Below the pieces are notes generated by a model. The model was not told the origin of the DNA, did no database searches, and worked only from the letters and a program-made list of their open reading frames with translations. The position numbers were made by a program, and so were the translations under genes. This document shows, piece by piece, positions 5,186 to 54,393 of a DNA stretch of 64,000 bases (position 1 is the stretch's first letter; each line of letters starts with the position of its first letter). Source of the DNA: Azolla caroliniana (lineage: Eukaryota; Plantae; Polypodiophyta); contig JBHGNT010000007.1 in NCBI GenBank assembly GCA_043228905.1, forward strand, positions 11,594,001 to 11,658,000, given 5' to 3'.

Positions 5186-5631
5186 TGTCAGGAGTAGTAC
5201 TAAAACAGAGAGAGAATTAGTACTAGAGAAGGGAAGTACTATTAGTACTAAGAGGACGGGACTACGTAAGACTCCCGAGAGAGAGAAAAGAGAAGAGAAG
5301 AGAGAGAAAGAGAGATAGTGAGGACGAGAGAGAGATGATGATAACATATGATATATTATAGAAAGAGTAAGTACAAGATGGCTATGAGGCTTAAGACTGG
5401 CGTTGAACCAATTTGGTTCAAAACAATGCCTTGTGCCTCCTTTTATAGTGCTCTCAGGAGTAGACTTGAAGCTTCTAGAATGTTCCAGAGATATCTGGAA
5501 TATATATTAATTTCTTATAATAAAGTATAAATGAAAATAATATCCTACAAATTACAATAGATGGTGTGATGGTTAAGAGCTCGACCCATATACCATAAGG
5601 TCATGGGTTCGAGTCTTGCCATATCATGACA
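5186..5631 (-). repeat. G1 3' LTR
   Basis: TGTCA...TGACA, pairs with 10526-10973. Confidence 0.95.
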
Positions 5632-7376
5632 CTATCCTCCCCTTAAGACGACGAGTGGAACGAGTCGACATTGATTGAGGACCAGGTTTGTTGGGATACT
5701 ATCGGTGAAAATCAGCAAGAAGATCTTGAGCATTGGCGACGGGCTCCCAAGTACGTTCGCTCGGACTATAACCGAGCCAATCGACCAAATAATAAAGTTT
5801 GTTGCGAACAAATTTGGAGTCAAGGATGGCAACAACTTCATACTCCGGGCCAACGTCTAACTCAAGTGGGGGCGGCGGTGGTGTAACACGATTGGGAATA
5901 GTGTTTGCTTTATAAGGTTCAAGAAGAGAACTATGGAAGACCGGATCTTCATACTCCGGGCCAACGTCTAACTCAAGTGGGGGCGGCGGTGGTGTAACAC
6001 GATTGGGAATAGTGTTTGCTTTATAAGGTTCAAGAAGAGAACTATGGAAGACCGGATGTATTCGAAGATGCGGAGGAAGATCAAGGCGGAACGTGACATT
6101 ATTAACCTTACCGGTAATACGGAAAGGACCGAGTTGTCGATAATACAACTTGTCGCACGGTCGAGTAGTCTTGATGTGACGATGTAAAAGCCATACTCAA
6201 TCTCCGATGGCAAAAGCCGATGACGATCCACGTAAGTCTTCTGTGTTTGTTGAGCATGACAAAGATGAGTGGAGAGATCCATCTGGATCTTGCATAGTCT
6301 CTCCAAATGATCCTCGACATGAGGATTGGTAGGTAGGTCCGGGGTGTCGATCACCGACCAACGAGGATGAGAACCGGTATAAGCATAGAATGGGGAGACT
6401 CAAGTCGAGGAGTGAACAACATTATTATACGCAAACTCCGCAAAGTGGAGAATCTCGGCCCAATCGTCCTGTTGATAACTTAGGAAACACCGGAGGTATT
6501 GCTCCAGTGTTTGGTTTGTTCGTTCTGCCTGCCCATCGGTCTGAGGATGGTAGCCGGAGGAGAGGTTGCAAGAGACCTTGAGCATCTTGAAGAGATGCTA
6601 CCAAAATTTGGAGACGAATTGCGGTCCTCGGTTACTTATGATACTGTCTGGGAGGCCATGATGCCAAAATACCTCACACATGACAAGGGCGGCGGTTTCC
6701 TCGCTAGTGATGGCCTTAGTACACGACACAAAATGTGCCATCTTCGTATATCGATCGACGACGGTTAAGATAGCATCGAACCCCTTCGAGATCGGCAGAT
6801 CTGTGATAAAGTCAAGACAAATAGACCGCCACGGCTTACTTGGAATCGGTAAGGGTTCCAACAAGCCATATGGATGGTGCGTGGCATCTTTGCTCGGCAG
6901 CAAGCATCACAGGTCCAAACGTAGTCGTCGACAAAATGTCGCATATGGGGCCACCAAAAGGATCGTTGAACTAGATCCAACGTCTTAGTGCTACCGAAAT
7001 GTCCCGCCATATGGGTGTCGTGACAACTTTGGATGATTTGAAGGCAACAAGAGCAATCGGGGACATATACAAGTTTTTTAAAGAATAACAAACCATCATG
7101 ATATTCGAATTGTTGGTAGTCCATACTTGGTTGTTGAGACTAGGAACAGGATGCCCGAGAGGTATTAATGTGCACCATAATGTCTTGAGCAAAATTGTTC
7201 GTCTTCAAGTTCGCACGTATGGTGTCGGTAATTTGGGAATCCATTGGGGTGTGAAAAATCTGCGTTGTGTGCAATCGTGTTGGTCCCAAGATGACTTGCT
7301 TTTGATTATCGAACGCTGGATCACCAGGACGAGGTGCAAGATATGAACGCCATGATAGTGCATCTGCCTTTCCTTG

Positions 7377-8777
7377 CTACTTCCCCGGTCGATATGCGAT
7401 TTTGAAATCAAAATGTGTGAGGAATTGAGCCCACCTAGCTTGCTGTCGATTTAGCACACGAGCATTTTGGAAAAAAGAAAGATTCTTGTGATCACTGAAG
7501 ACGATGACCTGATGTGGAGAGCCCTCTAAAAAATGCCGCCATTGCACAAATGAATCCACGATGGCTAATAACTCCTTGTCATGTATTTCGTAGTTGATTT
7601 CCGCAACATCGAATTTGCGCGAATGGAAAGCCACAGGATGTAACTCTTCTTTATCTCCTTGTTGAGAAAGGATGCTACCGAGGGCGAAATCTGATGCGTC
7701 GGCTTCCATGATGAATGGTTTGCTTGTATCCACATGAGCTAGAATAGGTGCTGATGTAAAGACTTTCTTAAGATGGCGAAAAGCCATGTCCGCTTTATTG
7801 GACCAAAGAAATGCTTGTCCCTTCTTCGTAAGTTGTGTGAGAGGTAAAATAATCTTCGAGTAATCCTGTATAAACTTGCGGTAGAAGTTAGCAAAACCTA
7901 GAAAACATTGTACATCTCGTACTGACCGTGGAATTTGCCACTCTAGCACAGTTTGGACTTTAGCTGGATCCATGGAGATGCCCTTTGAGGAGATAACGTA
8001 GCCTAGAAATTCCACTTGCTTGCAGTCAAAGCTACATTTTTCTAGCTTGGCATAAAGACCATTCTTGCGGAGTCGGTTTAGTACTAATAGTACATGAGAA
8101 TCATGCTCTTCTTGGGTCTTCAAATAAATCAATAGATCATCCAGATAGATGATCAAACAAATATCCAAGAGGTCTCTGAATATATCATTTGCCATGTGTT
8201 GGAAGACTCCGGGCGCATTGGTTAGACTGAATGGCATAACAGTATATTCGAAATGCCCATACCGCGTGCCAAAGGCGGTCTTCCATTCATCTCCCGGTCG
8301 GATCCGCACGAGGTTATACGCTCCTCGTAGATCAATTTTTGTAAAAAACTTGGCACCATTAACTCGCTCTAAAAGACTTGATATAAGAGGAAGTGCATAC
8401 CTATCCCGAATGGTGACCTTATTTAAGCCGCAGTAATCAACGACGAGACGAAGTGAGCCATCTTTCTTCTTGACAAAGAAGATGGGTGCTCCGGCCGGAG
8501 ATTTCGAATGACGAATAAACCTGCTTGCCAAGTTCTCCTCTATGTAGGCTCGAAGGACTTCTAACTCGGTGGGTGACAAGTTGTAGATTGGTCCCCATGG
8601 TGGCTTTGCTCCTGGTTGTAAATCGATGGGACAATCGTAGGGACGATGATGAGGAAGAGTACCGGCGTTTACCTTGTCAAATACGTCGGCATAAGGATGA
8701 TATTTCGCCGGAAGTTGCACTAAGGATTCCTCCTTAATATTGTTGGAAGGATGTACTGATATGACAAATGGGAACAT
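7377..8777 (-). pseudogene. G1 pol fragment: reverse transcriptase and RNase H
   Basis: [24 protein letters not shown]; flanked by frameshifts and stops. Confidence 0.92.
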
Positions 8778-10525
8778 TGCCTCCTTGTGTCCTTCTTCGC
8801 GTAGTTGACGTAGTGAAATGGTCGAAACTCGATGAGTAGATTCTTGGGGTTGACGATATCAGACTTCTCTTGTTCTCCAATCTATGTCTGGATTATGTAG
8901 TTCAAACCAAGGTAATCCTAGGACAATGGGATGCTCTAGACTACTAATTATATTAAATGATACTACACACACAAAACTACCTAGGACAACCTGAATGGGT
9001 TCTAACTCTTCTACAATATTCCCGGAAGCAATGGGACAACCATCAATGACTACTGCAGATGCGGGGCAAGGAAGTTTTCTTAAGGATATCTGAGAAGCTT
9101 AGGCAAAATTTCGATCCATGAAACAGGAATTGGCTCCAGAATCTAAAAGTGCTAGGACTTGTAATGGGGGAGTACTTTTAGTACTAACCATGACTTGGGC
9201 TAGGAACACATTGCTAACTTGCTTGGAGGGAATGGAACCACAAATGGGCTATATAGATCTATGGTTGTCCAACCAAACGACTCCTATTTTGGCTGGACTC
9301 AATCGTTTAACTCTTCATCTAATTGACTAAGGATTTCAAATTTGTTTGAGATACTTGGGCTATTAGTACTATTAATACTATTAGACACTCTATTAGTACT
9401 ATTAATACTATCAGACACTCCTAAGGGAAGAATTGACTCGGGTTTAGTACATGCTACGATTTGATTTACCTGTCTTCTTGGCCTATGGGGACAATTGATT
9501 GCAATATGCCCTGGTCCACCGCAATAAAGACATAATCGGTTTGCACGTCGTCGTTGCTTTTCTTCTTCTAATAATGGGCCACGTCGACGCATGGTGTTGA
9601 TCTCCATCGGTGTCAGAGTATTTACTTGAGGTATGTCTTGTGCAAATGGTTTAGCCGCGATTGAGGTGTAAGTGGGCTCCGGCCTAGAGCATGGTATTTG
9701 TAATTGACGTTTCGAACGCCGTTCAGAAAGGCGGTTGTCAATCCGGACCGCTCGACTGATTGCCTCCGTAAGAGACTTTGGTTCTTCGGGGAAGGTTAGA
9801 AGTAGATCTTTGACATCGTTTCACAGGCCGTAGCAAAATTGTTCCATTAGTGCCTAATCATCCCAGGGGATATCTGAACCGAGTAGACGGAAATCCGCTG
9901 CGTAGGCAGAGGCTAGACGATCACCTTGACGCAATCGTCGGAGTTTGTTGATCGCCGTCCGGATGCTGTCTGTATCTCCAAAGCAAGCTTTAAACTCACT
10001 AATAAAGTCTTCAAAGTTATTAAGTAAGGGCGATTGTTTTTCCAGAAGCAGAGCAAACGGTGCCAAGGCTGAGCCGCTAAGCAATGTGCCTATGAGGCCG
10101 ACTCGGGATGCATCAGTGGGGTATCAAGAAGGATGCATTTGAATGACCAAGCGTACCTGATTGAGGAATCCCCTAAATTGCGATCGTGTTCCATCAAATT
10201 TCACAGGAAGTTCAATCTTGGGCTCTTTATGAAATCCTTGGGGACTTGATCCTTGCTGTTGCAACACTGCTTGGAGTTGTTGCACACGTAACGCTAACTC
10301 CCCATGTTGTTGCTACGTTTGCTGTTTTTCTAGGGCGATTTGTTGAAGATCCCCTAACAACCGTTGGTTTTCTTGTTCCAAGGCAACAAAATTTTCTTTT
10401 AGACACTGTAGCTCGGAGAAAACGAATTGGTATTCTTGGGTGTTAACAGAAGCCATTGTATAGAAAAAAGGATAAGAGGATGAGGGAAACCAAAAGAAAG
10501 ACTAGAGAGGAAAATTGGTTCAAAC

Positions 10526-10973
10526 TGTTAGGAATAGTACTAAAATAGAGAGAGAATTAGTACTAGAGAAGGGAAGTACTATTAGTACTAAGAGGACAGG
10601 ACTGCGTAAGACTCTTGAGAGAGAGAAAAGAGAAGAGAAGAGAGAGAAAGAGAGATAGTGAGGACAAGAGAGAGAGATGATGATAACAAATGATATATTA
10701 TAGAAAGAGTAAGTACAAGATGGCTATGAGGCTTAAGACTGGCATTGAACCAATTTGGTTCAAAACAATGCCTTGTGCCTCCTTTTATAGTGCTCTCAGG
10801 AGTAGTCCTGAAGTTTCTAGAATGTTCTAGAGAAATCTGGAATATACATTAATTTCTTATAATAAAGCATAAATGAAAATAATATCCTACAAATTACAAT
10901 AGATGGTGTGATGGTTAAGAGCTCGACCCATATACCATAAGATCATGGGTTCGAGTCTTGCCATATCATGACA
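10526..10973 (-). repeat. G1 5' LTR
   Basis: Pairs with 5186-5631 with several substitutions. Confidence 0.95.
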
Positions 10974-11403: not shown

Positions 11404-12510
11404 TTACCGATGGGGACACGTGGCCTCCTTCGAGGCGTCGTCCGGGAACTGGTCCGTGCCGTGGGTCTCGGTGAAAGGATTCACTGGGGTCTTCCCGTGG
11501 TAAGGTCGAATTCGGAAGCCATTTACCCAGCTTTTGATGATGTCTCCGGCAAGTGTGCTGAGTTGGAATGTGCCGTTAAACTCGTCAATTATCCAGAAGG
11601 GGCATGTCCATCGGAATCGTAATTTCCCCGGCATAGCACCGAGTCGTGTTTGGAAGACTAGCACTGGTTTGCCGATGGTAAGTGATTTCTCCGTACCCTT
11701 CCGGTGTCGATCGACGAAGACTTTGCATTGTCGTTGGTGTTGTTCCAAGTGAGCCATGCTGGCCACTCGTTGTTCGCCGAGTTCGAGGAGTTGTCCGAGA
11801 CGATATTGCTCTGATTGGGCCTTGGGTAGCCTTTCCTTAACCTGAACTCGGAGACTCGGAACTTGGAACTCGATCGGCATGACTGCTTCCAAACCAAAGG
11901 CCATCCGAAAGGGTGTAGACTGAATGCTAGTTTTGAATGTGGTGCGATACGCCCATAATGCACTCTAGAGCTTGTCATCCCAATCAGTGCGGTTCTCATT
12001 GACGATCTTTTTCAGGATTGTTTGCAAACTTTTATTAGTAGACTCCGCCAATCCGTTTGCCTGTGGATAGTACAACGTACTTTTCTTACCTACGACTGCG
12101 TAGTGTGTAGTGAGCTCGCGAATTATGTTGTTTATAAAATGCCCGCCTTGGTCACTGATGAGCTCAATTGGGCATTCATATCGGCACCATAGATGTTCGT
12201 ATACGAATTTTGCCTTGGATGCAGCTGTGTTGTCCCGCAATGCCTTAGCCTCGACCCATTTTGTGCAATAGTCTGTGGCCATGATGATGTATTTGTTACC
12301 GGTGCGGGCCGCGGCTGGTTTGAAAGGTCCTACAAAATCTAACCCCCACTTTTAAAATGGCTCTAACGGAAGAATGGGTTGGTGCGACATCCGAGCTTGC
12401 TCGGTCGGTTGTCCCATGCGTTGACATAGATCGCATTGTCGATAGAATTCATGAGCATCTTTTTTTGTTGTGGCCCACCATAAGCTATTTTTCTTGCCGT
12501 GGCCTCACCA
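11404..12510 (-). pseudogene. Element T integrase (fragmented)
   Basis: DYCTKWVEA, ISDQGGHF, YYPQANGLAE, GKLRFRW; no chromodomain seen. Confidence 0.9.
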
Positions 12511-12514
12511 ATTG

Positions 12515-15500
12515 TGTCGTGCCTTACAACTCCGGATCGTTGTGTGAGTCGGGTGGGAACCGCTGGGGTTATGGACTAGGAGGAAAGAAAATTCTAAGGC
12601 AATTAAGAATATGAAATATATTGTAAGAAAGAAAGATATGAAAAACTCATGAATCCCACGAGTATAGTGTATTAGCGAGTAATCAAATTAAGAGAGAAAA
12701 TAGTTAGCAAATTCGTGAATCCCACGATTATATTATATTAATCAACCCTTGTAAAATAATCAACAACCTCTATACATCTTTCTCTCTTCCTTATATAGTG
12801 TTGGAAGAGTCTAAGTTTATCACATGCAGCCATCATGCTTTTCCTATCTTTAGTTTTCATGCACACTACATGTGCATGATTAGCTTTCTATCTCATCTTT
12901 TCTTTTAACTCGAGTGTCTATGCATGAATAACTTTTGTACCATGCATGTTTAGAAATTTTACATGGGATAAAGTTTAGTATAACTTTAAAATTCATAATA
13001 CGCTACTATAACAATAAGGCTTAACATTATTAACATGGAGGTGCAAGGTTCGAATCTTGCCCTATGCATGTAATATATATATATTTTTTATACTTCCTTC
13101 TATTTACAAATATGTCTCTTCATCCGGTGAGAGACTCTCTCCGGCCTTCTTCATCCAGCTCTTTCCGGTTCTGCTTCATCCGGTGCTTGATAGTTTTCTT
13201 TGTCCGGTTCTTACCGGGACCTCCTTACCGATCTCTTTGTCCGTTTCTCATCGGGTACTCCATGTCCTATCCGGAGTGTAATTTTTCACGTAGTGTGCGA
13301 ATTACACTACGACACTCGCCCCCTCCTAACCCGCACATCCTCCGGTATGTGCCGAAGTCCCCGATGCTTGCTATTCACCTTCATCCGAAGCTTCCTCCGA
13401 TTCCCCCCTTAAATTGACTATGAGTTCTAATCCACTTTCTTCGCTTTCCGCATCACCGCGATCTTCGTCCGATTGCTCCTTCTGGTCGGTCTTGTCTAGG
13501 ATCACACAGGGTTCTTTATCAGTCTGCTTCTTGAAAATCTTCACCCGTTTCCCGGCTATAGGCACTCGTAGCATTGTTCCATCCAACTCACATAGTCGGT
13601 AAGTTCCGTTTTCGAAAACTTTCTGAACCTCGTATGGCCCGAACCACCTTTTCGCGAACTTCCGCATCGTTGTATGTTGATGATCCAAACTACTGTTGTA
13701 GACAATCACCCAATCTCCTTCTTCAATCTTCTGTGGTCGTAGTCGGTGCTTGGTGTCGAACCGGCTTTTGTTCCGGAATCACACTTCTTGTTGTCGGCGT
13801 ATTGCTTCCGCTATGTCTTCTGGTCTTCCCTCTAGTTGTCATATCCGGACCGCTAGTAGTTCTTCCCGGCTCATCTCTTCCTTCCATGGTAGCATTGTCC
13901 ATGTCGCGATTGCGGTTTCCGTCGGCATTACCGGTGCTTGTCCGGTCATAAGTTCTGCCGGCATGTAACTGGTTACGGAGCTATGCGTCGTCCGATCCGC
14001 CCATAGTGCATACGAAAACATCTGCGGCCAATCCTTCACCCTTCCATCGCATGCCTTCGCAAGTGCTTTGACAATCGGACTATGTCCTCGTTCGATCTTC
14101 CCATTGGCTTCCGGATTGTATGCCGTTGTCAGTGTTAACCGAACTCTATGCTTAGTGAAGAATTCCTTAGCTTTATCAGAGTCGAGTTCTCCCCAATCCG
14201 CAATCACTTGTCCTACACACCCGTACCTGCAAAACACTTCTTCCAAAAGGAATTGGCATACTGTAGAACACGTTTTCCTCCGTAGCGCCTGACCTTCTCC
14301 TTGATTTGTGAGATCTTCCCGAGCTAACACCAAGTACTTCTTTTGTCCGATCCCGGTTGGCATGGCTACAATGTCGACCATCCATTTGAAGTTGATTGTC
14401 GGTGAGAATGTCGGATGTAACTCATCTCGGTGTCGAACTCCGGAGTAGATTTGAAACTTCTCGCAGCTTTCCGTGAACTCCGCGACATCTTTGTACATAT
14501 TCTTCCACCAATATCTTTGCTTGATCTTTCCAAATGTTGCCCATGTTCCCCGATGTCCAGCCCAATCAGATTCGTGAAATTCAGACATTACCTGGTTTCG
14601 TTGCTATTTTGTCCTGACTACTCGAAGTGGTATGCCACCCGGTCTTTTCGGCTCCCTCCATAAAAATCCATTTTTCAAGAAGAACTTTCGGACTTGCCGT
14701 TTCTTACTTCGGATCTCGGCTCTCTTCTCTTTATTGTCCGATGATTGCTCGATTTCTCGTAGCATTTTCCCGATCAACAAGCTTTCTCCCTCGTATTCTT
14801 CTTCTCGGAATTCTTGGATTACGTCCACCTGGCATATGTGCTCCGAAGCAAAGTAGTCTTCGGAAACTTCTTCATTATCGGATTCAGTTATGTCATCTTC
14901 GAACCGCGCCCTTGATAGCATATCCGCTACAACGTTGTCTTTTCCGGAGATGTGTCTTACCTCCGGATTAAGTGACTTAACATATGCAATCCATCTTAGC
15001 ATAGCCACATCCAGTATCGTGCAACACCGCATCATCCCGAGTATCGGAAGACAATCCGTTTCAATCACTACTTCGGCTCCGATCAAATAATCTTGATCCG
15101 ATTTGATTGCCGACACGACTCCCCATAATTCTCTTTTGACTTGTGCATATCCGTGTTGCCTTTCGTTGAGTACCTTTGCTCCGAATCAGATCGGATATCG
15201 CGAACCTTCTGGATCGGCTTGATTGATGACCCATCCGATTCCGGTTGGACTTGTGTCAACCGTTACTATGATCGGTTGGTCATAGTTCGACTTCTTTAGT
15301 GCTTCTGCCCTCCGTAGTGATTTCTTGAGCTTCTTCACGGCTTTGGTATGCTCCGGTTTCCATTCAAACTTCTTACCCTTCCGCAACAAGTGATAGAGTG
15401 GGTCCGCTATATGTGCATAGTGTGGAATCCATATGTGGTAGAATGCACATGCTCCAAGAAACCTTCGAACTTTGGATTGTGACTCGTATACTTCTTTCAT

Positions 15501-18099
15501 AGCTTGAATCGTGTCGATCTTGGTTGGTGACGGTCTTCGGCCGTAGGGCCCACATAGATGTCCGACTACCAATATTTCTTCTTGTCCGAATGCCGATTTC
15601 TCTCCGGAAAGTGTTAGGTGCACATCTTCTAACTTTCGAAGCACTTTCTCACAATCGCAAATATGGTCGACTATGAACTTTCAGCATCCCCGATCATCCA
15701 TAGTTTCATCTTTTTCTTCTACCGCGCATCCTTTCATTGGAATGTTATCTAGGAACGGCATCGTTATCTCCGGAATGCAGTCTCGAAGCACCTTGTTCAT
15801 CGCATTCATCATATGTGCGACCGAGTTCGTCGCGCCTTGTGGTAGCGTACACATCCGGACTAATCCTATCGGTGTCCGCATGGTAGTGATGTCTCGACTC
15901 TTCACAGCCAGTTGGAATTGGTCATATCCGGAGTATAGGTCTCCGATGGAGTGTATTGCGCGACCGGCAAATGCTTCTGCAAATTCGTCTACTATTGGAC
16001 CGACTCCGGAGTTCCGGATCGTGACCTTGTTCACCGGTTGCAAATCTTGAATAAATCGGAGTGACCCATTCTTCTTCGGAACCGTAAACCATCGATTTGA
16101 GTACGGAGCATTTGATGGCTCTAGAATCCCCATCGCCACCTTCTCCTTGAGCAAGTCGATGATTTTCGGAATATGCGCCCGTGGCACTGGAATCGGCTTC
16201 AGGTTCCACGACACATGGTCAATCGTGAAGATCACCATCGGCTCCACTATGTTCGGGTCAACGCATCCTATTTCTTTCGATGTAAATGCAAATGCTCTCC
16301 CATGTCGCTCTAGCATCCCACAGAATCGTTCTTCTTCATTCTTTAATAGGAACCCACTTCCACCGATCCGAAGTTTCTTCCGGGTCTCATCCGTGAAGGC
16401 ATGTCCAATATCCATGGACTTTCGAAGTGTCGGATCCCCCGAGACTTCTTTCCTCTTTTGTTCGCTATTTGCAGGTAACGGTCCCGCGGCCGGTTTCACT
16501 TTTTCTCCACGGTCTTGTATTTCATACTTACCCTTGCTTCTTCTTTGCGGAGCGCATCCGGCCCCATTTTCACAATGATCTCGTACATCTCGACCGATAA
16601 CTTATCCTCCACTTTTCGGTATTCTTTCTTCATTCCTCCGGTTACGGCTGTGTACGTGGATGCCCCATTCGGACCGATTCGTACTTGTTTTGAATTGAGA
16701 GGTTTCATCCTGTGTGGGGTATCAGGGCTTCTCGGACTATCACTTCCCCACTTCACAACAGTCTGCTCTAAAAATCCATTCTTGTTTGGGACAAGAGCTC
16801 TCTCTTGTTCCTTTCATGATTTTCCGGCACCGTTAGGAATTGGATGGATTTCCCTCTGTTTTGGCTCCGACAGTTGAGAAAAATGATGCTCGAAGTCTAC
16901 GAATGCTTGTGTCGCGCCTTGGTGGGTCTTCGCTGATGTCACCCATTGGTCGAAGTTGCGTCGATCTCGTCCCTTCAGTCTCTCATAGCCATATTCCTCC
17001 AATAGAGCCTTCTCGAAAATCGCCCACAAATCATGAGCTTCTAGAAGCTCTTTTACATCTTTGAAGATTGGTTGAGACACCACCCGACAAAAGTACTCCA
17101 ACCTCATAGCTTCATCCACACCTCTTGAATCCATCTCTACATTATAGACTTTTAGGAAACTTTGGACTTCGGCACTGTTGAAATAGCTCACTTGCTCGAC
17201 TACCTTCTCGACGGCTTGTTGGGCTTCATTTCGTCTTTTCCCTTCTCTTAGAAACTCCATCATCCTTTTTGACATTGCCTCCATGAGATATTCGCCATCC
17301 ATCTTCGTCCTCCCCTATTGCTCTTCACGTCGGGTTCACCAATTACGTCGTGCCTTACAGCTCCGGATTGTTGCGTGAGTCGGGTGGGAACCGCTGGGGT
17401 TATGGACTAGGAGGAAAGAAAATTCTAAGCCAATTAAGAATATGAAATATATTGTAAGAAAGAAAGATATGAAAAACTCGTGAATCCCACGAGTATAGTG
17501 TATTAGCGAGTAATCAAATTAAGAGAGAAAATAGTTAGCAAATTCGTGAATCCCACTATTATATTATATTAATCAACCCTTGTAAAATAATCAACAACCT
17601 CTATACATCTTTCTCTCTTCCTTATATAGTGTTGGAAGAGTCTAAGTTTATCACATGCAAGCATCATGCTTTTCCTATCTTTAGTTTTCATGCACACTAC
17701 ATGTGCATGATTAGCTTTCTATCTCATCTTTTCTTTTAACTCGAGTGTCTATGCATGAATAACTTTTGTACCATGCATGTCTAGAAATTTTACATGGGAT
17801 AAAGTTTAGTATAACTTTAAAATTCATAATACCCTACTATAACGATAAGGCTTAACATTATTAACATGGAGGTGCAAGGTTCGAATCTTGCCCTATGCAT
17901 GTAATATATATATATTTTTTATACTTCCTTCTATTTACAAATATGTCTCTTCATCCGATGCTTGATAGTTTTCTTTGTCCGGTTCTTACCGGGACCTCCT
18001 TACCGATCTCTTTGTCCATTTCTCATCGGGTACTCCATGTCCTATCCGGAGAGACCAAAAATGTAATTTTTCACATAGTGTGCGAATTACACTACGACA
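12515..18099 (-). mobile_element. N2: tRNA-Trp-primed Ty3/gypsy, internally deleted and degenerate
   Basis: LTRs 12515-13314 and 17346-18099; PBS 17324-17341; PPT 13315-13326. gag N-terminus 16814-17302, RT 15681-16499, RH 14604-15644, IN 13371-14588; no protease recognisable. Confidence 0.92.
17324..17341 (-). promoter_or_regulatory. N2 primer-binding site, tRNA-Trp
   Basis: TGGTGAACCCGACGTGAA, complementary to the 3' end of plant cytosolic tRNA-Trp as I recall it; 4 nt from the LTR. Confidence 0.85.
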
Positions 18100-18388: not shown

Positions 18389-18504
18389 ACGTTGTCGTAG
18401 TGTATTTCGTACACTACGTGAAAAAGTAAAAATAATATAACCGATTTAATTACATATAAATAAATAAAATAATATATCAAGATATTTATCACGTGCATAG
18501 GGCA

Positions 18505-18558
18505 GGATTCGAACTCTGCACCTCCACGTTGACAAACCCCAACCTTACCATTATGCTA
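18505..18558 (-). promoter_or_regulatory. tRNA-like Pol III type-2 promoter (A and B box) in N1 5' LTR; duplicate at 21135-21188
   Basis: A box TAGCATAATGG, 32-nt gap, B box AGTTCGAATCC within a T-arm-like stem. Confidence 0.75.
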
Positions 18559-19129
18559 CCTTATCTTTAGTGTTCTATAAATAGATTTAATAACTATAAG
18601 TGATTTATTTGCGCCTACCTTTATTAAAAGGTAAATCATGTATTTTTAGAGTGCGTGAATATTTTATAGAAAAACGCAAGCGACTAAAAAGTGACTCATG
18701 CACATCTAGCGTGCATGAGCACTATATTTAGCAAATAAAAGCAAGGATTAGAAAAGCATCACATGCACATTTAGTGTGCATGAACATATGAGAAAAAGCA
18801 TGTAGCTATGCTTAGTCTCTCCCATCACTATATAAGGATGGGGAGCACATTGTAGTTTTTGTTGATTATTTTTCTATAATGATCAATCAATCTAAAATAT
18901 TCGTGGGATTCACGAATTTGCTAAAATAATTCTCTCTTACTACCTAAATATTGACTAAATATACTAAACTCGTGGGATTCACGAGATTCTTATCTTATAA
19001 CTCTTTATACCTATTCTTTACTAGCCTTATTTGTATTTTTCTTCCTCCTAGTCCAAAACCTCGGCGGTTCCCACCCGACTCACGCAACGATCCGGAGCCG
19101 AAAGGCACGACACAGTTGGTGAACCCGAC

Positions 19130-21070
19130 GTGAAGACGGGTGGCAAGGAGATGGAGAATCAACAAGAGGCAATGAGCATAACGATGATGATGATGTTCGA
19201 GCGGATGCTACAAGAACAACGAGTGATGTCGGAGATCACGGGGGCAGTAAAGCGGCTCGTACAACGAAACGGACAATTCAACGGAAACGATGTGTCACGC
19301 TATCTACGTGACTACAAGGCGGAGATGATACGATGTGGGATACCGGAAGGATTGCAAGTGACATCCTTCAATCGGGTGGCCACGGATGAGCTACAAGAGA
19401 GAATCCACAAGATACGGCAACAAAACTCGACATGGGGGTCATTCGAAGAAGCTTTATGAGAGGCATATGATTACAAGAGATCAAAGGGACAAGATCGGCG
19501 AAAATTCGACGAATGGGTGGCATCGGAGAAGACCCACCAAAGTGCAACACAAGCATTGCTAGAGTTCGAGCATCGTTTTGCTCGACTCTCGGAGCGGGAA
19601 CAACGATTGGTGGGGGAGGATAAAGTCCTAATGTTCATAAAATCGATCGATCGAAAAGAAAGGATGGACATCGGGATTGAACTCGAAGATGATGACGGTG
19701 CGAACGGTCTTACTAAGGATTGGGCCAAAGTCGAAAGGGTATGCCGGAGACATGATGAGAGGAAGATGAGAATCTTGTCAACGACATGGCCGATGAAGGA
19801 TGGTCGATTGAAGACAAACGATGGAGCCGATATGAAGGCCGAAATACAACATGATGGTGCGACGGAAGAGGGTGTAAAACAAGCTACCCTCTTGTCTTGC
19901 GAAAGAACGAGGGTGAAGGATAAGGCCGATAACCCAAGTGTAGAAGAAGATTTCGGAATACAAGTGTCCGAAACATCGGGTGAAAAAGGGGTAAGCATAA
20001 TTGATGTTTGCATAATTGATGCAGTGAAAGAGAGCAAGGAGGACTTGATTGAGGAGGTCGCCATGAAAGATGACATCGAATCGAAGGTGGCTATGGACGA
20101 ATCAACGACGGATGGCCATATCGAGACTTCCCCACCACTGATTCCAGAGACTCCGGCGGTTGCGTTCGAAAGGCAACGTGAGACCGAAGAGACGGAAGGT
20201 GGCGGAGAGAAAACAAAGGTCGAAGTCGATGCATACGACGGAGAGATAGCCGAGAATATGGCTATGGGTGAAACAACGGAGGATGATAATACCGAGGATT
20301 CCTACCCACTAATTCTAGAGACTTCGGCAGTTGTGTCCGAGAACCAACGTGAGACCGGAGAGACGGGAGGTGGCGGCAAGAAAGGTAAAGTCGGAAGCCA
20401 GTTAGGATGGAAGGTGATCCGGACGGGATTCCGATCCGAAAGAAAGCCGAACCGGGTAAAAGAGGATTCGACCGAAAGTCGACCCGAAAGAAAGCCGAAC
20501 CGAAAGGAAGAGAATTCGGCCGAAAGACGACACAAACGAGACCGATCCGGAAAGAAGCTAATCCGACTCAACTGGAGGTTGGACCGGTCGAGGCTGGTGA
20601 AAACGAGGAAAAGAAAGCCAACCAAAACCGAAACCGATAGATCGAAACCGGGCCGGAAGGAGACCGACTCAATCGAAACCGAACAACCGATTCCGATTTG
20701 GCCGAATACGAATCCGATCAGAAGCCGATCAAACCGAAAGTTGATCGGACGAGAGCGATCCGGAAAAAAGTCAAGGTTGATGAAGACAAGAAAGAGGCTA
20801 GTAAAAGACACTACCACGAATGACAAGGGCCAAGAATATGATGAGAGAGAACAAAGAATATGGTGGATCGGATGGCGACAATGGTTCGCGTGGAAAGAAT
20901 GGGTCTACTCAAAATGGAGAGACAAAGTTGACATAGCGGGACAAACGGAGGATGAAGGGGAGACAACGAGCATCGGCAACTTCGGCACATACCGGAGGAT
21001 GTGCGGGTTCGGAGGGGGCGAGTGTCGTAGTGTATTTCGTACACTACGTGAAAAAGTAAAAATAATATAA
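19130..21070 (+). pseudogene. N1 Gag-like ORF with long acidic then basic low-complexity tail; one in-frame TGA at 19457-19459
   Basis: ORFs 19130-19459 and 19517-21070 share a frame. The N-terminal part aligns with N2 gag (KGQDRRKFDEWVASEKTHQSATQA vs KGRDRRNFDQWVTSAKTHQGATQA). Confidence 0.8.
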
Positions 21071-23810: not shown

Positions 23811-23815
23811 ATTCA

Positions 23816-29351: not shown

Positions 29352-29356
29352 ATTCA

Positions 29357-31396: not shown

Positions 31397-31401
31397 AATT
31401 G

Positions 31402-43540: not shown

Positions 43541-44116
43541 AGGGGGAGTTTGTTGGGATTTCGGTCCCTCCGGATGGGATGTCCGGAGATGAATGACGAC
43601 AAGCCCGGTTGCGGTTACGGAGCCGGATGACGAATGTACCCGGAGAGAGATCCGGATGCGGAGACATATTCGTGAATATGTTTGCCAAGAGCCCTTGAGG
43701 CTATATTTGTAAATAGCCCGAAAGTCATATGTGTATAAATATGACTTAGGGCAAACAGTTTTGCTGTTGCTACTCATTTTTCTGTTTTTCCACTCAAGAG
43801 GAGTGAAGAGAGAGCAGCCGTGTGAGAGATAGAGTGTGAGAGAGGAAGAGGTCGACGCCTCTGTGTATTTCCGCCGCCTGTGGCGAGGACAACGAGCTCA
43901 AGGTCGTCGCCTTGCAGCTCGCCATTTGTATACTTCTCTGTGCATAGTTCGTTTGGAGTCTTGGACTCCCGTGGTTTTTCCCGTCTAGGGTTTTCCACGT
44001 TAATCTCTGTGTAATCGTGTCCTTTCTCTGTGGCTCCTATTTTCTGCTATATTGATTCGCGCTTACTCGGTTGTGGTTGAGCGGTGAAGGTTAATCGGAG
44101 CATCGATTGCTCAACA

Positions 44117-45984
44117 GGTGGCTCTTTTCCTCGTTGGAGGTCAATGGGACAATCGTATGGCCGATGCTTTGGAAGTACACTAGCTTTGACTTTGTCGAAA
44201 ACATCAACATATTCTTGATATTTTTCGGGAATTTGGATGTTTGAATTCCCTTGAGTCGCACTAGAAGGTGTCACTGATATTCCAAATAAAAAAAGTTCCT
44301 CCTTTCCTCCCACTTGGAACAATTGCTGCAATGTGATGGTTGAGATTTGGTGAAAAGGAGATGGTGCAGTGGTAGAACTATATTCTTTAAGGGAATACTC
44401 TCGAGTTCGATCCTTAGCAATGATGTTTTTTGCAGAAGGGCACCAAATTTCTCGCCTCCTCCAATCTGTTCGTGGGTTATGTAGCTCGAACCATGGCAAA
44501 CCAAGGACAATTGGATGCTCGGCGCTACGGATTATATTAAAGGAAACTACACATCCTAAATCACCTAAGAGTATGTGTATTGGCTCTGCCTCTTCGAATA
44601 TCTTCCCGGAAGCTATGGAACGACCATCAATCACTACTACGGAAACTGGGCAAGGAAGTGTGTGCAAGGATATTTGATGTTTTTGGACAAAATCTCTATC
44701 CATGAAACAAGAATTGGCTCCGGTATCTAAGAGGGCTTGGATGTGAAGTTGGCACCTTGGTGTCCTAACTTGTACTTGGGCTGAGAAGACTCTACTAACA
44801 TGCTTCGATGAAATGGAACCTACACTAGGTTGTACAGAGCTAGGTTTGTCCAACCAAATGGCTCCTATTTTGGCCAGACTTATTCGTTTGACTTCTTTTC
44901 TCATTGTCTTAGGACTTCAAACTTATTGGACAAGGATGGGTTATTCATAATATTAGAATCACTAAGTGTTTCTAAAATGTTGGACTCATTTTTATTGTCA
45001 TAGTGAATTTGATTTACCTGACGTCTCGGCCTACGGGAGCAATGAATGGCTATATGTCTTGGACCTCCGCAATATAAGCACAGACGGTTTGCTCAACACC
45101 GTTGCTTCTCTTCGTCCAACAATGGTCCTCGACGTTGGGTCATATCAATCTCCATGGGTGTCAGCCTATCCATTGGGGTTGGGCTACGTGTTTGCCTTGT
45201 GGTTGGAGCAGGGCTATATGTTTGCCTTGGAGACGATTGCGCCATTACTGATGCATAAGTTGGTGTGTATCTTGATCTTGTTATTCGTTGTTGTCGCTCA
45301 CATCGACGCTCAAAAACATGATTATCACACCGTATTGCTCGACTAATAGCTTCTGCAAGTGATCTTGGATCCTCGAGGAAGGTAAGAAGTAAGTTCTTCA
45401 CATCACTACGAAGCCTGGAACGAAATTGCTCCATTAGAGCTTGTTCATCCCAAGGAATATCACTTGCGATGAGACAAAAATTAGCGTCATATGTTGAGGC
45501 TGGTTGATCTCTTTGACGTAGTGTATGAATCTTGTTGATTGCCATTCTTGCCCCATCTGTATCTCCGAAGCAAGCCTTAAATTCTTTGACAAACTCCTCG
45601 AAATTATGCAGTAGAGGAGAATTTGTCTCTAGTAATGGAGCAAACCATGACAACGCTATGCTAGTCAATAAGGTGCCCACTAACCCGACTCGTGATGCAT
45701 CTATTGAATAACGCGTGTGATGCATTTGGATTACCAACCACACTTGATTCAAGAAACCTTGAACCATCGAATTTAGCTAGGAGACTGATTTTGGGCTCCT
45801 TAATACTTCCTTGACCTTCAACCCTTTGTTGTTGTAAAATTACAATTGTCGATTCTAATTGTTGCACCCATCGTGTAAAATCTTCTTGTTGTAGTTGCTT
45901 CTCAACAGTAACCTTTTGTAGATCCCCAAGAAGATGTTGATTCTCTAATTCAAGAGATGCGAACTTGGATTTAATATTCTCCAT
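44117..45984 (-). pseudogene. Chromovirus A gag and protease (degenerate)
   Basis: LLDTGANS protease; gag pieces homologous to G3 gag. Confidence 0.9.
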
Positions 45985-46062
45985 TTCTGCAACAAGGGTG
46001 AGATATTCTTCCGAGTTGATGGCAACTGTGTTTCGTGATGTATATAGAGGAGGATAAGGGAG

Positions 46063-46154
46063 AGATAGATAGATAGATAGATAGATAGATTATATTATCG
46101 TCTTTGGAGGTCAAATATGACCTATGAGACCAAGAGAGAGAGAGAGAGAGAGAG
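46063..46154 (+). repeat. (GATA)n and (GA)n microsatellites in the 5' leader of element A
   Basis: Direct reading of the sequence. Confidence 0.9.
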
Positions 46155-46170
46155 GGAATTCGAATCAAAC

Positions 46171-46611
46171 TGTCAGAACCAAGAGAAAAGATAGAGTGGT
46201 AGAAGAAAGATGTAAAGAGATCACAAGAAGAGAGGAATGAAGTGATAAGAGAAGAATGAATGTATTAGTAAGATAGACTGAAGATGGATACAACAAAGGT
46301 GACGAAAGCTTAAGATTGGTGTTGATTCGAATTGGTTTGAGAAGAATCATATGTCCATATTTATAGGTTCCTGTAGAATAGCCTAGTGATTTCTATAATG
46401 TTCTAGATCTAGAATATTCTAAGATGTTCTAGGATATTCTAGAATGTTCTAGAATGTTCCATAACTTTTACAATAATCAATCTATTACAAGAAGTAGCTT
46501 TTATTATTTTATATAATCACATGCTATCGTAATGGTTAGGATTTTGATTATGTATTACAAGGTGTTGGGTTCAAGCTCAAGTGAAGCCATGATGCTTATG
46601 TATTCATGACA
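46171..46611 (-). repeat. 5' LTR of chromovirus A
   Basis: TGTCA...TGACA with the same layout as the G1/G3 LTRs; the partner LTR lies outside the window. Confidence 0.85.
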
Positions 46612-48362: not shown

Positions 48363-48449
48363 CTTGGCTCTATTCAGCATGTCCTAAGAGCTGATCAGGT
48401 CGTCAACTTTTCTCCTTTTTCTTCTCTTAGGAATGGGCCGATCATAACC

Positions 48450-49762: not shown

Positions 49763-49878
49763 CCCTTTGTGAACAGAGCAGTGCCAATGTAATTGGTGTC
49801 GAGGATAAACATCCTCCTGTCCCGACGCTCTTACGTGATTATCTAGCCTTCTTCCTTGATGAAGCACTTGAGGTGCGT

Positions 49879-50991
49879 TGTCGTGAAGATCTGTCACTAC
49901 ACGCGGATCGTGAGGCGGAACCGCCGGGGTTCTGGACCAGAAGGATTTAGAGTCGATACAAGCTTTGGCGAGAAAGTACTTAAGATAGATTGGGAAAGAG
50001 AGAAGTTGAGATTCAACGATTGAGAAAGATCGATTGAACTTTTTATCTTTGGATTTAAGAAACAAGTTACACCATCAATTTGATAACAAATTTCTTCTTC
50101 TTAATTTCATAATAAAAAAAAACCGTGTTTTTTCTCCTCCCCCTTCCCTCTTTTATAAATGCTCTCATGCATATGATGCATGTGAGGGTACAAGACATGC
50201 ATAAATTGCATGTTTGCCATTTGGCGCTTATGTATTACATGTGGTGCATGATAACCATGTCACTCATTTTAGCTCTCATGTATGAGAATTTACATGTAAA
50301 AGTACAATGATAGAAATATAATTTCAACTAAATAGCATGGCTTAATGGTAAGCCAATTGACTCCTAACTTGGAGGTGCAAGGTTCGAATCCTTACTTGCC
50401 CTCCTTGTATATGTAAATATGTATATATATTTATATATTTATTTATCTAGTCGCCGGACGCCGGTTCGCCGGATACTGTCGTCGGTTGCCGTCGGTTACC
50501 GGTGCCTCGCCAGATGCCGTCGGTTACCGGTGCCTCGCCGGATGCCGTCGATTACCGGTGCCTCGCTGGATGCTATCGCCAGATCACCGGCTCCATCGCC
50601 GGTCCGGTTTTGGTTGGCCAAAACCCTTTACGAGTAGCTAGCCCACCTCCACTCTTAGTTCAAGTTACCTTGAACTCTCTATGCTCCACACATAGACACA
50701 AAGATAATATCGTTTGGTCCACCTTATATATGATGAGAGCTGTATTTGTCGTGCTTACGTGGGATATCTCACAATTTTCTCTTTTCCTTTCACAAACTTT
50801 ATACCCTCATATCTTGACATTTAGTTGTCCATTTCTCGTGTAATAAAGTGCATTCGAAACCTCCATCATTTTGTACTTAGATATTAAATCTATTTAAAAT
50901 GTTATCTTCACAATTATTGTACTATGTGATTCATACTCGATTTCGTACGTTTTATGGGATTTTCACACTATTGCCGAAAATCTTCACGACA
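49879..50991 (-). mobile_element. Solo LTR of the N lineage (1113 bp)
   Basis: TGTCGTGAAGAT...ATCTTCACGACA; 4-bp TSD GCGT; ends homologous to the N3 LTR in reverse orientation. Confidence 0.88.
50338..50391 (+). promoter_or_regulatory. tRNA-like Pol III A and B box in solo LTR
   Basis: TGGCTTAATGG, 32-nt gap, GGTTCGAATCC. Confidence 0.78.
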
Positions 50992-51660
50992 GCGTAAACC
51001 GTACTTGCATCCCCTGGTCGATGATATGTTTGACCGACACCAGGTTCTTGGTTATTTTCGGAACATGCAACATGTTCATGAGCTTCCCTCTCGGTCCGAC
51101 ATGGCTGAGGGGAACTTCTCTAACATGTTCAATCGGGTGAGGAGTGTCGTCTCCGGTTTCGACAACTCCCGGTTGCTCCGGCTTTTCCATAAACGAGAAC
51201 CACTCTTTGTGGCTCATCATGTGGTTAGACACTCTGTAATCAACATATCACACTTCCTCCGATCTGGAAGTAGTGGTCTTCTTCATCGAATTCGCCTTGT
51301 GTTTCATCACAAAGGTTGACCCTTTTTCGGTCCCGGATCCTTTTGATACTTCAGCATAGTGTGAGCTTTGCCCGCTCCCTTGTCCAATCTTGCCGGATCC
51401 GGATTTATCCGAATCGGCCCAGGCTACTTCGAGGATGTGACGATTTTTGCGCTCGGCTACTCCGTTTTGTTGCGGAGTGTGTCGGCAAGTGAATTCTCGC
51501 CGAATTCCTTCCTTTCGGAGATACGCCATGAAATCGTCTGAGAAGTACTCCTTGCCGCCATCCGATCGAAGGCATCGTACGTGTCGGCCCGTGGCTTTCT
51601 CGACTTCATTCTTGAAATTTTGGAAGTGTCCGAACACTTCGCTCTTTTGCCGCATCGGGT

Positions 51661-54393
51661 AGAATGATAGACGAGAACTGGGTACTCTCCTCGAAGATGA
51701 TACCCAAGCAAACGGGCTTGTGGTGGACTGAGTTGCGGTGAAGCGAGCATGCAAAAAGATCGACATGCGTCATCAATGGCTTGATGACAGTGACTTGGTA
51801 ACGCCAAGCGTAGAAACATCAAGACCACCTAAAGAAGTCGAGTTGCCTAAACAAAGCAACCTACATGAAAAGAAGATTGATGATGACTCGAGGACGGAGA
51901 AGGCCACTTCGAGGGAGGATGAATCTTTCGGAACGCGCATCGTATTCGAAACATCAGATGATGAAGGAGCACGCCTAATCGAAGCTTGCATCAATGGAGA
52001 TAAAGAGTGCGAGGCTAGTGTAATTGAGGATCTAGCCCCTAAAGACGACGTCGAGGAGGTGACTATGAACAAGACAACAAGCGTCGACAATGACCATGGC
52101 CGGATGTTCTCCACACATGCTCCAGAGACTTGGGCAGTTGCGTCCAATGACAATGTGAGACCCAAGAGATAGAAGGTGTCGGCGAGGAGCCGAAGGTCGA
52201 AACGAATACATGTGACGAAGAGAGAAACATAATCGAAGCTTGCTCGATCAAGAAGGTCAATGGGTATGAGGCCCATGAGATTGAAGAGATAGCCATAAGA
52301 AATGACATCAAGTCAAGGGTGACTATGAAAGAATTAATGACAGATGGCCACATCGAGGATTCCTTCACACAAGTTCCAGAGACTTGGGCAATTGCAGAAA
52401 GCCAATGTGAGACCCAAGAGATGGAAGGTGGTAGTAAGGGGAAGGACCAAGACGGTGTGCACAACATCGAGGCGAAGATGACTATGAACGAGTCAATGGA
52501 GAATGGTCGTGTCAAGACTTTCCCACCACTAATTCTAGAGACTTCGGCGGTTGCGTTCAAAAGGCAACGTGAGACCGAAGAGACGGAAGGTGGCGGAGAG
52601 AAAACAGAGGTCAAAGTCGATGCATACGAGGAAGAGATAGTCGAGAAGGTGGCTATGGGCGAAACGACGGAGGACGGTAATACCAATGATTCTTGCCCAC
52701 TAATTCTAGAGACTTCAGCGGTTGTGTCCGAGAACCAACGTGAGACCGGAGAGACGGGAGGTGGCAGCAAGGAACGTAAATCCAGAAGTGAGTTCGGACG
52801 GAAGATGATCTAGCCGGAATTCCGGCCTACACAAAAGCCAAACGAAGTGGAAGTGGATTCGAGCCTGACCCGGATGGAAATCGTTTCAGTTGGAATCCGA
52901 TTAGACGAGACCGATTCGGAAAGAAGCTAATCCGACTCAACCGGAGGTCGAACCGGTCGAGGCCAGTGAACACGAGGAAATGGAAGCCAACCCGGACCAA
53001 AACCGATTGGTCGAACCCGACCCGAAAGGGGGCCGACTCGGTCGAAACCAATCAACCGAGTCTGATTCAGCCGAATACAAATCCGAACGGAAGCCGATCC
53101 AACCAAAAGCCGATCGGCTGAGACCGATCTGGAAAGAAGTCAAGGTTGATGAAGACAAGGAAGAGGCCAACCAAGCACACTACCATGGACGACAAGGCCC
53201 AAATGAGCCAAGCAAATGAGCCAAGCAAATTTGAAGGGTGTTACCGAGGATGAGATCTCTACTAAGGAGGGCTCTAACGTGAAGATCATCAACTCTAACA
53301 CGAGATTGTACGACGAAGGTGGACAAAGTGCGGAGTGCCTTGACCAAGGAGATGGTTGGAACAAAGGTGGAACATGCATAAAGCCTAACCGGTTATGCTC
53401 GGAAGGAGAACAAGGGGCCATGACAACTGCTCATGGTAAAGCAAAGAATGAGCGAATGATATGGTGGATTGGGTGGCAACAATGGTTCGAGCCAAGGGAA
53501 TGGACATGCTTGAAATGGAGGAATCGTAATAATCACTGTAGCCGAAATCTCACACTCTCTCTTCTTGGCACGTACCAGAGGACGTGCGGTTTGGTGGGGG
53601 TGGATGTCGTGAAGATTTCCGGCAACGTTGTGAAAATTGTGTGCAACGAACGAAATCATGAAGATGCAATGTGCACATGTGAAAGGGGTGAAGGCCACAC
53701 ACATATGCTAGCATGTTGTAAATAGGACTGAAATGAGAATCCTAAAAGAAAAGCTAGATGCAAAGTTAAACATGTGCACGTGTGATGTGTGCTCAATTGT
53801 AAATATAAAAATAAGACTAAAGACTAGTAACATTTAAGAGCATATATAGGGTTGGAAGCAAGGCCTGAACCTTGCACCTCCAAGATAGGAGACAAATTAA
53901 CTTACCACTAAAGCCACTACTAAGTGCTGTAGAATTTGTATATTTTCTTTTCATATTCAGTATTTTGTAGGAAGCAAATATATAGAAACCGTGGGCACAA
54001 AACCATGGTTTCAGCTCATGGTTTTAGCCCATGGTTTTAGCCCATGGTTTCAACCCACGGTTTTGGCCCGTGGTTTTAGCCCATGGTTTTTGCATGGAGA
54101 GACCTATAAAAGCCTATAGTGGGGCTTGTGTAAGGAGGCAAGTGATGTAAGTAAAAAAGAAACTTTTAATCAAAGTTCTGAGTTATCCTAATGGTGATGT
54201 ATCTCGTCTCGTAAAACTAAAGTCAAGTGTTCAATCTCTAACTCAATCTCTCTCTCTCTCTCTCTCTCTCTCTTCATCCATCTATCTATCTTCAATACTT
54301 TCTTGCTTACGTTGCTAAAAAATTTGAATCCTTTTGGTCTAGGACCCCGGTGGTCCCGCTTCATTTCGCGAACACGCGAGGATTTCCTCGACA
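51661..54393 (+). mobile_element. N3: 5'-truncated relative of N1 (low-complexity ORF remnants, PPT, 3' LTR 53605-54393)
   Basis: About 52500-52800 closely matches N1 about 20100-20400; Trp-rich motif; PPT-like GGTGGGGGTGGA; LTR TGTCG...CGACA. Confidence 0.85.
54003..54090 (+). repeat. 13-bp tandem repeat CCATGGTTTTAGC in the N3 LTR
   Basis: About seven degenerate copies just upstream of TATAAAA. Confidence 0.85.

Follow-up and report, generated by a model that had tools for sequence, protein, structure and literature searches.

Long terminal repeat (LTR) retrotransposons with RNA polymerase III (Pol III) promoters inside their LTRs have been described as "TRIMp3", a group of miniature, non-autonomous elements in which the promoter is derived from a transfer RNA (tRNA) in Helenus and from 5S RNA in Cassandra and Ajax (PMC10886601). 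For the autonomous partners of such elements, Kojima argued that they "must use" Pol II promoters, and an antisense arrangement of the Pol III-type sequence was not described (PMC10886601). Here, we analysed a 64,000-nt stretch of the genome of Azolla caroliniana (Polypodiophyta; assembly GCA_043228905.1, contig JBHGNT010000007.1, positions 11,594,001 to 11,658,000 of the forward strand), hereafter the window, in whose own coordinates all positions are given. The window (64 kb, 45.7% G+C) consists of nested LTR retrotransposons, as established by self-comparison and domain scans. Two unrelated Ty3/gypsy lineages within it, a Tcn1-like chromovirus lineage (G lineage: elements G1, G3 and A) and a lineage with a primer-binding site (PBS) of tRNA type (N lineage: N1, N2, N3 and a solo or 3′ LTR), carry a module of A and B boxes of tRNA type in the U3 region of the LTR, on the strand opposite to the element, and this module is inherited with the LTR.

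The closest known family is Helenus, together with Cassandra and Ajax. As in Helenus and the other TRIMp3 elements, the LTR contains apparently tRNA-derived sequence in which the boxes are conserved while the rest diverges and which encodes no functional tRNA, and G1 and G3 have target-site duplications (TSDs) of 5 bp, like fungal and plant Helenus. Unlike the TRIMp3 elements, which are non-autonomous and 0.3-1.3 kb long, the carriers in the window are autonomous 5.7-kb chromoviruses and a tRNA-primed gypsy family, along with non-autonomous derivatives. The carriers also keep a TATA-type Pol II promoter of their own, which in the G lineage includes heat-shock elements, and the tRNA-like part, which is in the sense orientation in the Helenus LTRs of the published supplement and is thought there to drive transcription of the element (PMC10886601), is antisense here. 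Because of the autonomous carriers, the antisense orientation and the Pol II promoter alongside, the module was not filed as Helenus. As to the carriers themselves, G1 and G3 resemble SM-Tcn1, a Tcn1-like chromovirus of Selaginella and one of the Tcn1-like chromoviruses of non-seed plants, in the architecture given in the sections of PMC2864245 that deal with it: a length of about 5.7 kb, LTRs of about 440 bp bounded by TG..CA, a 5-bp TSD, a gag along with a pol that has a chromodomain, and no tRNA-type PBS. Those sections mention no tRNA-like part of the LTR and report that neither tRNA priming nor self-priming was found, whereas G1 and G3 have the module and appear to be self-primed (see below).

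A preliminary description of the window had reported antisense A box/B box pairs in the U3 of seven elements. A motif search, combined with a mapping of LTR pairs, polypurine tracts (PPTs; in G1, G3, N1 and N2), PBSs (in G1, G3, A, N1 and N2) and TSDs (in G1, G3 and N1), confirmed the coordinates, the strand and the U3 position: all the pairs lie where they had been placed, and the module is antisense to the element and within U3 in 7/7 window elements. Wherever the A box is intact, 32-33 nt separate it from the B box. The motif GGTTCRANYC occurs nine times in the window, compared to 2.5 expected, a number that none of 100 shuffled sequences reached. When we required an A box with at least seven of nine positions and a B box with at least nine of ten, at tRNA spacing, eight such composites were found against 0.585 expected, with a maximum of three among 200 simulated sequences. 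The B box of a type-2 Pol III promoter is near GGTTCGANTCC, with G53, T54, T55, C56, A58 and C61, and its A box is near TRGCNNAGTGG, 31-93 bp upstream of the B box. Judged by this standard, the window copies score 8-10 out of 10 for the B box, and the A boxes of G1, G3, A, N1 and the solo LTR agree at 8-9 of nine positions, with a spacing of 32-33 bp.

In the G lineage, all three elements lie on the minus strand and their modules on the plus strand. G3 (33472-39138, 5.67 kb) is an intact Tcn1-like chromovirus with identical LTRs (33472-33901 and 38709-39138), the TSD CACGG, a gag gene (37821-38639) and a pol gene (33913-37485) encoding protease, reverse transcriptase (RT), RNase H, integrase and a chromodomain. 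Its modules are at 33838-33891 in the 3′ LTR (boxes from 33838 and 33881; counted from the LTR tip at 33901, the module starts at 11 nt) and at 39075-39128 in the 5′ LTR (boxes from 39075 and 39118). G1 (5186-10973) is a full element of the same type with a broken pol, the TSD TCGCC and LTRs (5186-5631 and 10526-10973) that are 95.8% identical; its modules are at 5562-5616 in the 3′ LTR (A box 5562-5572, B box 5606-5616) and at 10904-10958 in the 5′ LTR (boxes from 10904 and 10948). Element A (44117-46611) is the 5′ part of a G-clade element, with gag, the start of pol and a 5′ LTR (46172-46611), truncated by a copia insertion, and its module is at 46525-46578 (boxes from 46525 and 46568). The module occupies the first 70 nt or so of the LTR in G1 and G3, where it adjoins the PPT, and begins about 25 nt deeper into the LTR in element A.

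The N lineage is represented by N1 (18393-21742, plus strand), a non-autonomous element of 3.35 kb with identical 720-bp LTRs, the same type of PBS and PPT as N2 and one open reading frame (ORF) of 517 aa, and by N2 (12505-18099, minus strand), a degenerate gypsy element of 5.6 kb with pol remnants, LTRs at 12505-13314 and 17336-18099 and the PBS TGGTGAACCCGACGTG. The N1 modules are on the minus strand, at 18505-18558 (5′ LTR) and 21135-21188 (3′ LTR). Those of N2 are on the plus strand: the copy in the 3′ LTR (13004-13057) has an intact B box (13047), a decayed A box and a T6 run 36 nt past the GTTC of the B box, and the copy in the 5′ LTR (17835-17888) has its B box at 17878. The N-type solo or 3′ LTR, which is on the minus strand, has its module on the plus strand at 50338-50391 (boxes from 50338 and 50381), and this copy fits both box consensuses best (A box 9/9, B box 10/10). 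N3 is on the plus strand and its 3′ LTR module is on the minus strand (53862-53916), with three cloverleaf-like hairpins kept and the acceptor stem absent. The module lies 113-166 nt into the LTR in N1 and about 258-310 nt into it in N2, behind an extra insertion of about 160 nt. It is upstream of the TATA box by about 140 nt in the G elements, about 280 nt in N1 and about 180-200 nt in N3 and the solo LTR; this order holds wherever the TATA box was located, which does not include the main TATA box of N2. The internal region shared by N1 (19517-21070) and N3 (about 52279-53202) contains the 517-aa ORF, which extends as far as the 3′ LTR and enters it; no Pfam family matched this ORF, and a divergent gag is one possible identity.

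Since the module is present in both LTRs of G1, G3, N1 and N2, it is a part of the LTR. No free-standing copy was found in the window, where the matches of a profile search lie only inside G and N LTRs, and this, along with the shared LTR pairs, bears out the earlier view of a module inherited as an LTR part as opposed to a one-off insertion of a short interspersed nuclear element (SINE). The module is similar to the head of a tRNA-derived SINE in being a decayed tRNA-like region with A and B boxes at tRNA spacing and a lost cloverleaf. It differs in that it has no tail of the type seen in long interspersed nuclear elements, no TSD of its own and no free-standing window copy, and it moves only within the LTR.

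The number of independent cases is smaller than the number of elements. The LTRs of G1 and G3 are 83% identical and those of A and G1/G3 are 62-67% identical; the module region aligns at 68-78% among N1, N2, N3 and the solo LTR. Between the G and N lineages, similarity is confined to the box regions, and the pol of N2 is only 23% identical to that of G3, which places the two lineages about as far apart as gypsy elements get. Hence, the modules of the seven elements, although all are present as first reported, include copies (the LTR pairs, and G1, G3 and A among themselves), and the independent cases are two lineages by descent, G1/G3/A and N1/N2/N3/solo LTR, with at most two events. The module carriers are these two gypsy lineages; the window also contains two copia families without the module and other gypsy fragments. 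The best named relatives of the copia polyprotein are all plant proteins, and for the N-lineage RT the best named match comes from a liverwort, Riccia sorocarpa, which points to a land plant, probably a non-seed one, as the host.

We then compared the modules by region, using identity between seven diverged families. Identity was highest at tRNA positions 44-48 (AGGTC, 0.81) and in the B-box core (0.78), followed by the 3′ part of the D loop (0.64) and the A box (0.52), compared to 0.35-0.40 in the flanks, 0.29 in the 5′ strand of the T stem and 0.28 between the boxes. The boxes are therefore much more conserved than their flanks, as the preliminary description had anticipated, in a contrast that is partly built in, since the alignment was anchored on the boxes. 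This bias does not affect the finding that all members of a well-supported clade have the motif and that it is absent elsewhere. In 13 aligned modules, G53, T54, T55 and C56 are invariant, and A58 and C61 are nearly so. On a tRNA gene, TFIIIC binds the B box with nanomolar affinity and base specificity and the A box with micromolar affinity, mostly by backbone contact; it makes additional base contacts just upstream of the B box, and the segment between the boxes is non-essential (PMC11724288). [quoted passage not shown] By sequence comparison, the footprint of the module matches these published contacts, and its invariant positions correspond to those through which TFIIIC reads a tRNA gene.

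To look beyond the window, 80 related chromovirus loci were taken from metagenome contigs without regard to the module, and more were added by exact protein look-up. An antisense B box near the LTR tip was found in relatives of the G clade at decreasing pol identity: L003 (94%), L004 (73%), L085 (71%), the single family L001/L002/L005 (68%), L090 (64%), L086 (61%), L092/L093 (54%) and L006 (53%). The LTRs of these relatives, which range from 53 to 94% in pol identity, are unalignable apart from the module, and the B box lies 12-42 nt from the tip. This variable distance makes a role in integrase recognition or PPT processing unlikely, and a function at the LTR tip was rejected on this ground. 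Where the contig extends far enough, an A box is usually present as well, usually 32-33 nt away, and the module is antisense in all the relatives that bear it. No strong module match (E < 0.01) was found in about 80 other loci. In a quick IQ-TREE run, which left out G1, L007, L011 and L031 (ORFs below 700 aa) and in which the "no module" label of L019 reflects a contig that ends before the LTR, six module-bearing elements form a clade with 100% support, and L006 branches beside it. As far as these sequences go, the module has thus persisted in the Tcn1-like lineage down to about 53% pol identity while the remaining LTR became unalignable. L090 and L086 have tandem B-box halves (positions 44-62) of the type GGAGGTCnnnGGTTCGAWACC without matching A boxes, at least three in L090 (1-140 and 5343-5424) and two in L086 (4658-4764), so that the B-box half behaves as a separate, repeatable unit. 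By analogy, this is the pattern of TFIIIC-only sites. Two weak matches to the module profile lie off the mapped LTR starts, at 61079-61099 in the window (E 2.3), upstream of a plus-strand gypsy element, and at 1006-1065 in L004 (E 0.036), and both are probably due to chance.

The U3 of the G clade also contains arrays of perfect heat-shock elements, alternating GAA and TTC (for example, GGAACATTCTAGAAGCTTC), upstream of the TATA box (G3, about 33740-33775; G1, about 5440-5480; A, 46395-46462; also in L004 and L006), which suggests that transcription from these LTRs would be heat-inducible. As the G LTR runs from the module through the heat-shock elements and the TATA box to the start with the self-primer, the module and the Pol II promoter stand back to back.

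Taken together, our preferred reading, which we hold with a confidence only a little above even, is that the module (55-65 bp, comprising the A box, a spacer of 32-33 bp and a B box extended to tRNA positions of about 44-62) is a tRNA-derived control region of the TFIIIC/Pol III type, kept in U3 by selection and predicted to recruit TFIIIC. It would act at the DNA level, by recruitment of TFIIIC and, where the A box is intact, also of TFIIIB and Pol III, on the outer side of the LTR, upstream of the Pol II promoter with its heat-shock elements and TATA box. The likeliest gain for the element, proposed with low confidence, would be that its promoter stays open or insulated within heterochromatin, where a chromodomain integrase is expected to direct insertion. 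If Pol III RNA is made, it would leave the element from the 5′ LTR, and from the 3′ LTR it would enter the end of pol in antisense; such RNA would more probably be a by-product than a selected function. With only two lineages, the shared antisense orientation is statistically of little weight. The backward orientation may even be forced: a sense copy would place a tRNA-like substrate for RNase P and RNase Z in the 3′ end of the genomic RNA, and it would also point Pol III toward the Pol II start site. A more specific proposal is that autonomous chromodomain elements carry their own TFIIIC-dependent barrier, which keeps a heat-shock LTR promoter usable within the heterochromatin where their integrase directs them, and that the N lineage acquired the same device independently; this is speculative and we consider it unlikely.

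By analogy, extra-TFIIIC (ETC) sites and B-box boundary elements may be what the module resembles most. B boxes that stand alone or in clusters away from tRNA genes, such as those of L090 and L086, are known from ETC sites, from the fission yeast IR-L and IR-R elements and from centromeric tDNA barriers (PMC7474672, PMC4502379, PMC2040200), and, like B-box boundary elements, the module lies at the edge of a unit that needs to be expressed beside or inside silent chromatin. The difference is that the ETC and boundary sites are host loci with demonstrated TFIIIC binding and barrier activity, whereas the modules are candidate sites in mobile elements of a plant. If the module does bind TFIIIC, full-length autonomous LTR elements, and not only SINEs and miniature terminal-repeat retrotransposons (TRIMs), would spread Pol III-type sites, which elsewhere are chromatin boundaries and anchors of genome organisation. 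A single mutable B box would then allow one to ask how insertions in silent chromatin remain expressible, and a part of the tRNA-like sequence in LTR libraries would be explained. The strand separates two uses of the borrowed promoter: a sense copy drives a miniature element (Helenus, Cassandra), and an antisense copy sits by a Pol II LTR promoter.

A number of observations weigh against a selected TFIIIC site, in addition to the anchoring of the alignment. ARAGORN predicted no tRNA gene, either in the window or among 15 related loci. With the Rfam tRNA model, no match was obtained in the window, nor on a 141-nt slice around the best copy at E values up to 10; the only Rfam matches obtained were chance microRNA-type or leader matches in repeats. 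The scan with tRNA covariance models, which had been suggested as a check, thus came out negative for the window modules. The acceptor stem is absent from the modules and the anticodon stem is usually absent too, and since no tRNA model recognises the module, the term "tRNA-derived" rests on its box and loop signatures. The solo LTR has a remnant of an anticodon loop, CTCCTAA, presumably compatible with an anticodon of the form CCN. N2 has a decayed A box, L006 and L092 have weak ones, and between the G modules and the LTR edge there is no T run that could serve as terminator. The module is absent from three G-side relatives (L084, L007 and L011, at 54-57% identity) and from all the more distant chromovirus loci, and three relatives of the N lineage from outside this genome (L087 from Riccia sorocarpa, L088 and L089, at 54-65% RT identity) have ordinary LTRs without it. 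Missing in six relatives, the module is dispensable, and it may have been gained twice or lost several times. The statement that two lineages have kept the module therefore stands for the G clade, down to 53% pol identity, and not for the N lineage, where the evidence is limited to this genome. Finally, in the work cited here, barrier activity of TFIIIC is documented for fission yeast (PMC2040200, PMC7474672), not for plants.

Some of these points would also fit a neutral relic, in which a tRNA pseudogene, a tRNA-derived SINE or a Helenus-type LTR landed in the U3 of each ancestor and only antisense insertions survived, as sense ones would harm the genomic RNA. The missing module in the outside N relatives, the decayed A box of N2, the failure of tRNA scanners and the inconsistent terminators are what such a relic would leave, and "not a few" Repbase LTRs have tRNA-like pieces, for which Kojima proposed an origin by SINE insertion (PMC10886601). 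A relic would not readily account for the G-clade boxes, which are 78-81% identical against 28-40% between the boxes and in the flanks, down to 53% pol identity, nor for the multiplication of the B-box half in L090 and L086, and no SINE tail or TSD surrounds the module within the LTR. We consider a neutral relic unlikely, at roughly one chance in five.

We regard it as improbable that selection acts on a Pol III transcript with a regulatory effect on the element, whether as a small RNA or as an antisense RNA covering the PPT and the 3′ end of pol. In favour of a transcript, most families have an A box at canonical spacing, the recognition of which matters for bringing in TFIIIB and Pol III (PMC11724288), the A box is preceded, at 15-30 nt, by an AT-rich, TATA-like sequence, and T4-T6 runs follow the N modules (36-82 nt past the B box in N1, N2 and N3). 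However, the first T4 downstream of the G 3′ LTR module is about 1.4 kb into pol, the position of the first T run varies widely among relatives, and no conserved sequence was found downstream of the B box in the aligned modules. The lack of a G terminator, the variable T runs and the unconserved downstream sequence make a selected antisense RNA less likely, and the logic of a Pol III terminator was rejected because the T-run positions are inconsistent. Moreover, the B-box arrays of L090 and L086 have no A boxes, and an RNA antisense to the element's own genome would invite silencing. In G1 and G3, no AAAA occurs on the sense strand over the final 1.35-1.44 kb upstream of the 3′ LTR (33903-35260 and 5632-7080), where about seven are expected. 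Relatives do not share this stretch, so the lead was dropped; the absence may be due to chance or specific to the subfamily.

We also looked for an RNA-level explanation. The D and T stems of the 13 modules pair at 55.8% of positions, compared to 53.2% in shuffled sequences, 110 of 500 of which paired as well, and no excess covariation was found in these stems; the earlier claim of a T-arm stem kept by compensatory changes was thus not upheld. Together with ARAGORN and the Rfam tRNA model, this pairing at shuffle level rules out that the module is a tRNA gene or pseudogene. The G1, G3 and L003 modules form a long imperfect palindrome, in which the A-box/D region pairs with the B-box/T region (33845-33897 and 5569-5621), and the RNA fold of the G1 and G3 modules is strong (z of -4.1 and -6.7). 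This palindrome could speak for a chance resemblance to A and B boxes, in what would be the binding site of another factor or a structural element of the RNA or DNA. The hairpin is specific to the subfamily, however, other families having z values near 0, and a conserved RNA fold was rejected for this reason and for the stem pairing. Since two unrelated lineages share conserved positions and a spacing that match those of tRNA genes, a coincidental resemblance seems quite improbable.

We next consider how the elements are primed. Over 10-12 nt, the PBS of the G lineage is complementary to a stretch of the LTR that lies about 30 nt past the TATA box. In G3, the PBS core TTGAACCAATT (about 38696-38706) has its reverse complement in the LTR sequence AATTGGTTCAA (33679-33689, minus strand), which lies downstream of TATAAAAGG by about 30 nt. 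PBS and self-primer change together in four families, G1/G3, L003, L002 and A (sites in G1 at 10511-10525; in A, PBS at about 46158-46171 and primer at about 46320-46331; in L002 at 4305 and 4454; in L003 at 140 and 5200). Complementarity of the PBS to the apparent first bases of the transcript (R), and not to a tRNA, is the pattern of Tf1/sushi-type elements, and the G lineage looks self-primed in the Tf1 manner. The PBS of the N lineage is of tRNA type and resembles what we take to be the 3′ end of plant tRNA-Trp; the T stem that it implies (ACGTG/CACGT) differs from that of the N module (GCAAG/CTTGC), and the 16 nt past the T loop of the module are unlike the PBS complement. A second PBS, by which U3 RNA would pair with the T and D arms of the primer tRNA, bridging the 5′ and 3′ ends of the genomic RNA, has a precedent in the bipartite PBS of Ty3 and the 3′ PBS of gypsy, which likewise have antisense-to-tRNA sequence in U3 just downstream of the PPT (PMC5371799, PMC1635307), and it could draw on the G module directly after the PPT and on the tRNA priming of the N lineage, but those sequences pair with the primer tRNA of the very element that carries them, the G lineage appears to be self-primed and to use no tRNA, the N module is unlike the implied tRNA end in its T stem and 3′ part, and the conserved positions are universal tRNA ones and not those of a specific tRNA, so that a Ty3-like 3′ PBS fails as a general explanation and is very improbable.

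Two further ideas were set aside. In a cursory look, no recurrent spacing of modules to neighbouring insertions was seen, which led us to reject a beacon for Pol III-targeted integration. An origin from the LTR of the Selaginella element Helenus-1_SMo was rejected as well, since no similarity past the tRNA consensus was seen by eye and the orientation is opposite.

Some minor features of the window concern the LTRs and their surroundings. The N-type LTRs have family-specific tandem repeats between the module and the TATA box (53982-54090 and 50470-50580). Those of N3 are units of the type CCATGGTTTTAGC, the source of a spurious mir-218 match, and the solo LTR has CCGGC-rich units of about 27 nt, which lie upstream of the module. 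An inverted repeat of about 465 bp with 89% identity (57144-57607 and 59398-59863) surrounds a fragment of a gypsy pol (57861-59420) that shares 33% identity with the G3 pol. The insertion point of G3 lies within a copia LTR, a few bases in from its 5′ edge, and the left flank of G3 (33261-33473) is 100% identical to the copia internal end (43612-43824) upstream of the LTR at 43818. Hence, the copia element appears to be a tandem array (internal-LTR-internal-LTR) that shares the LTR at 39139-39437.

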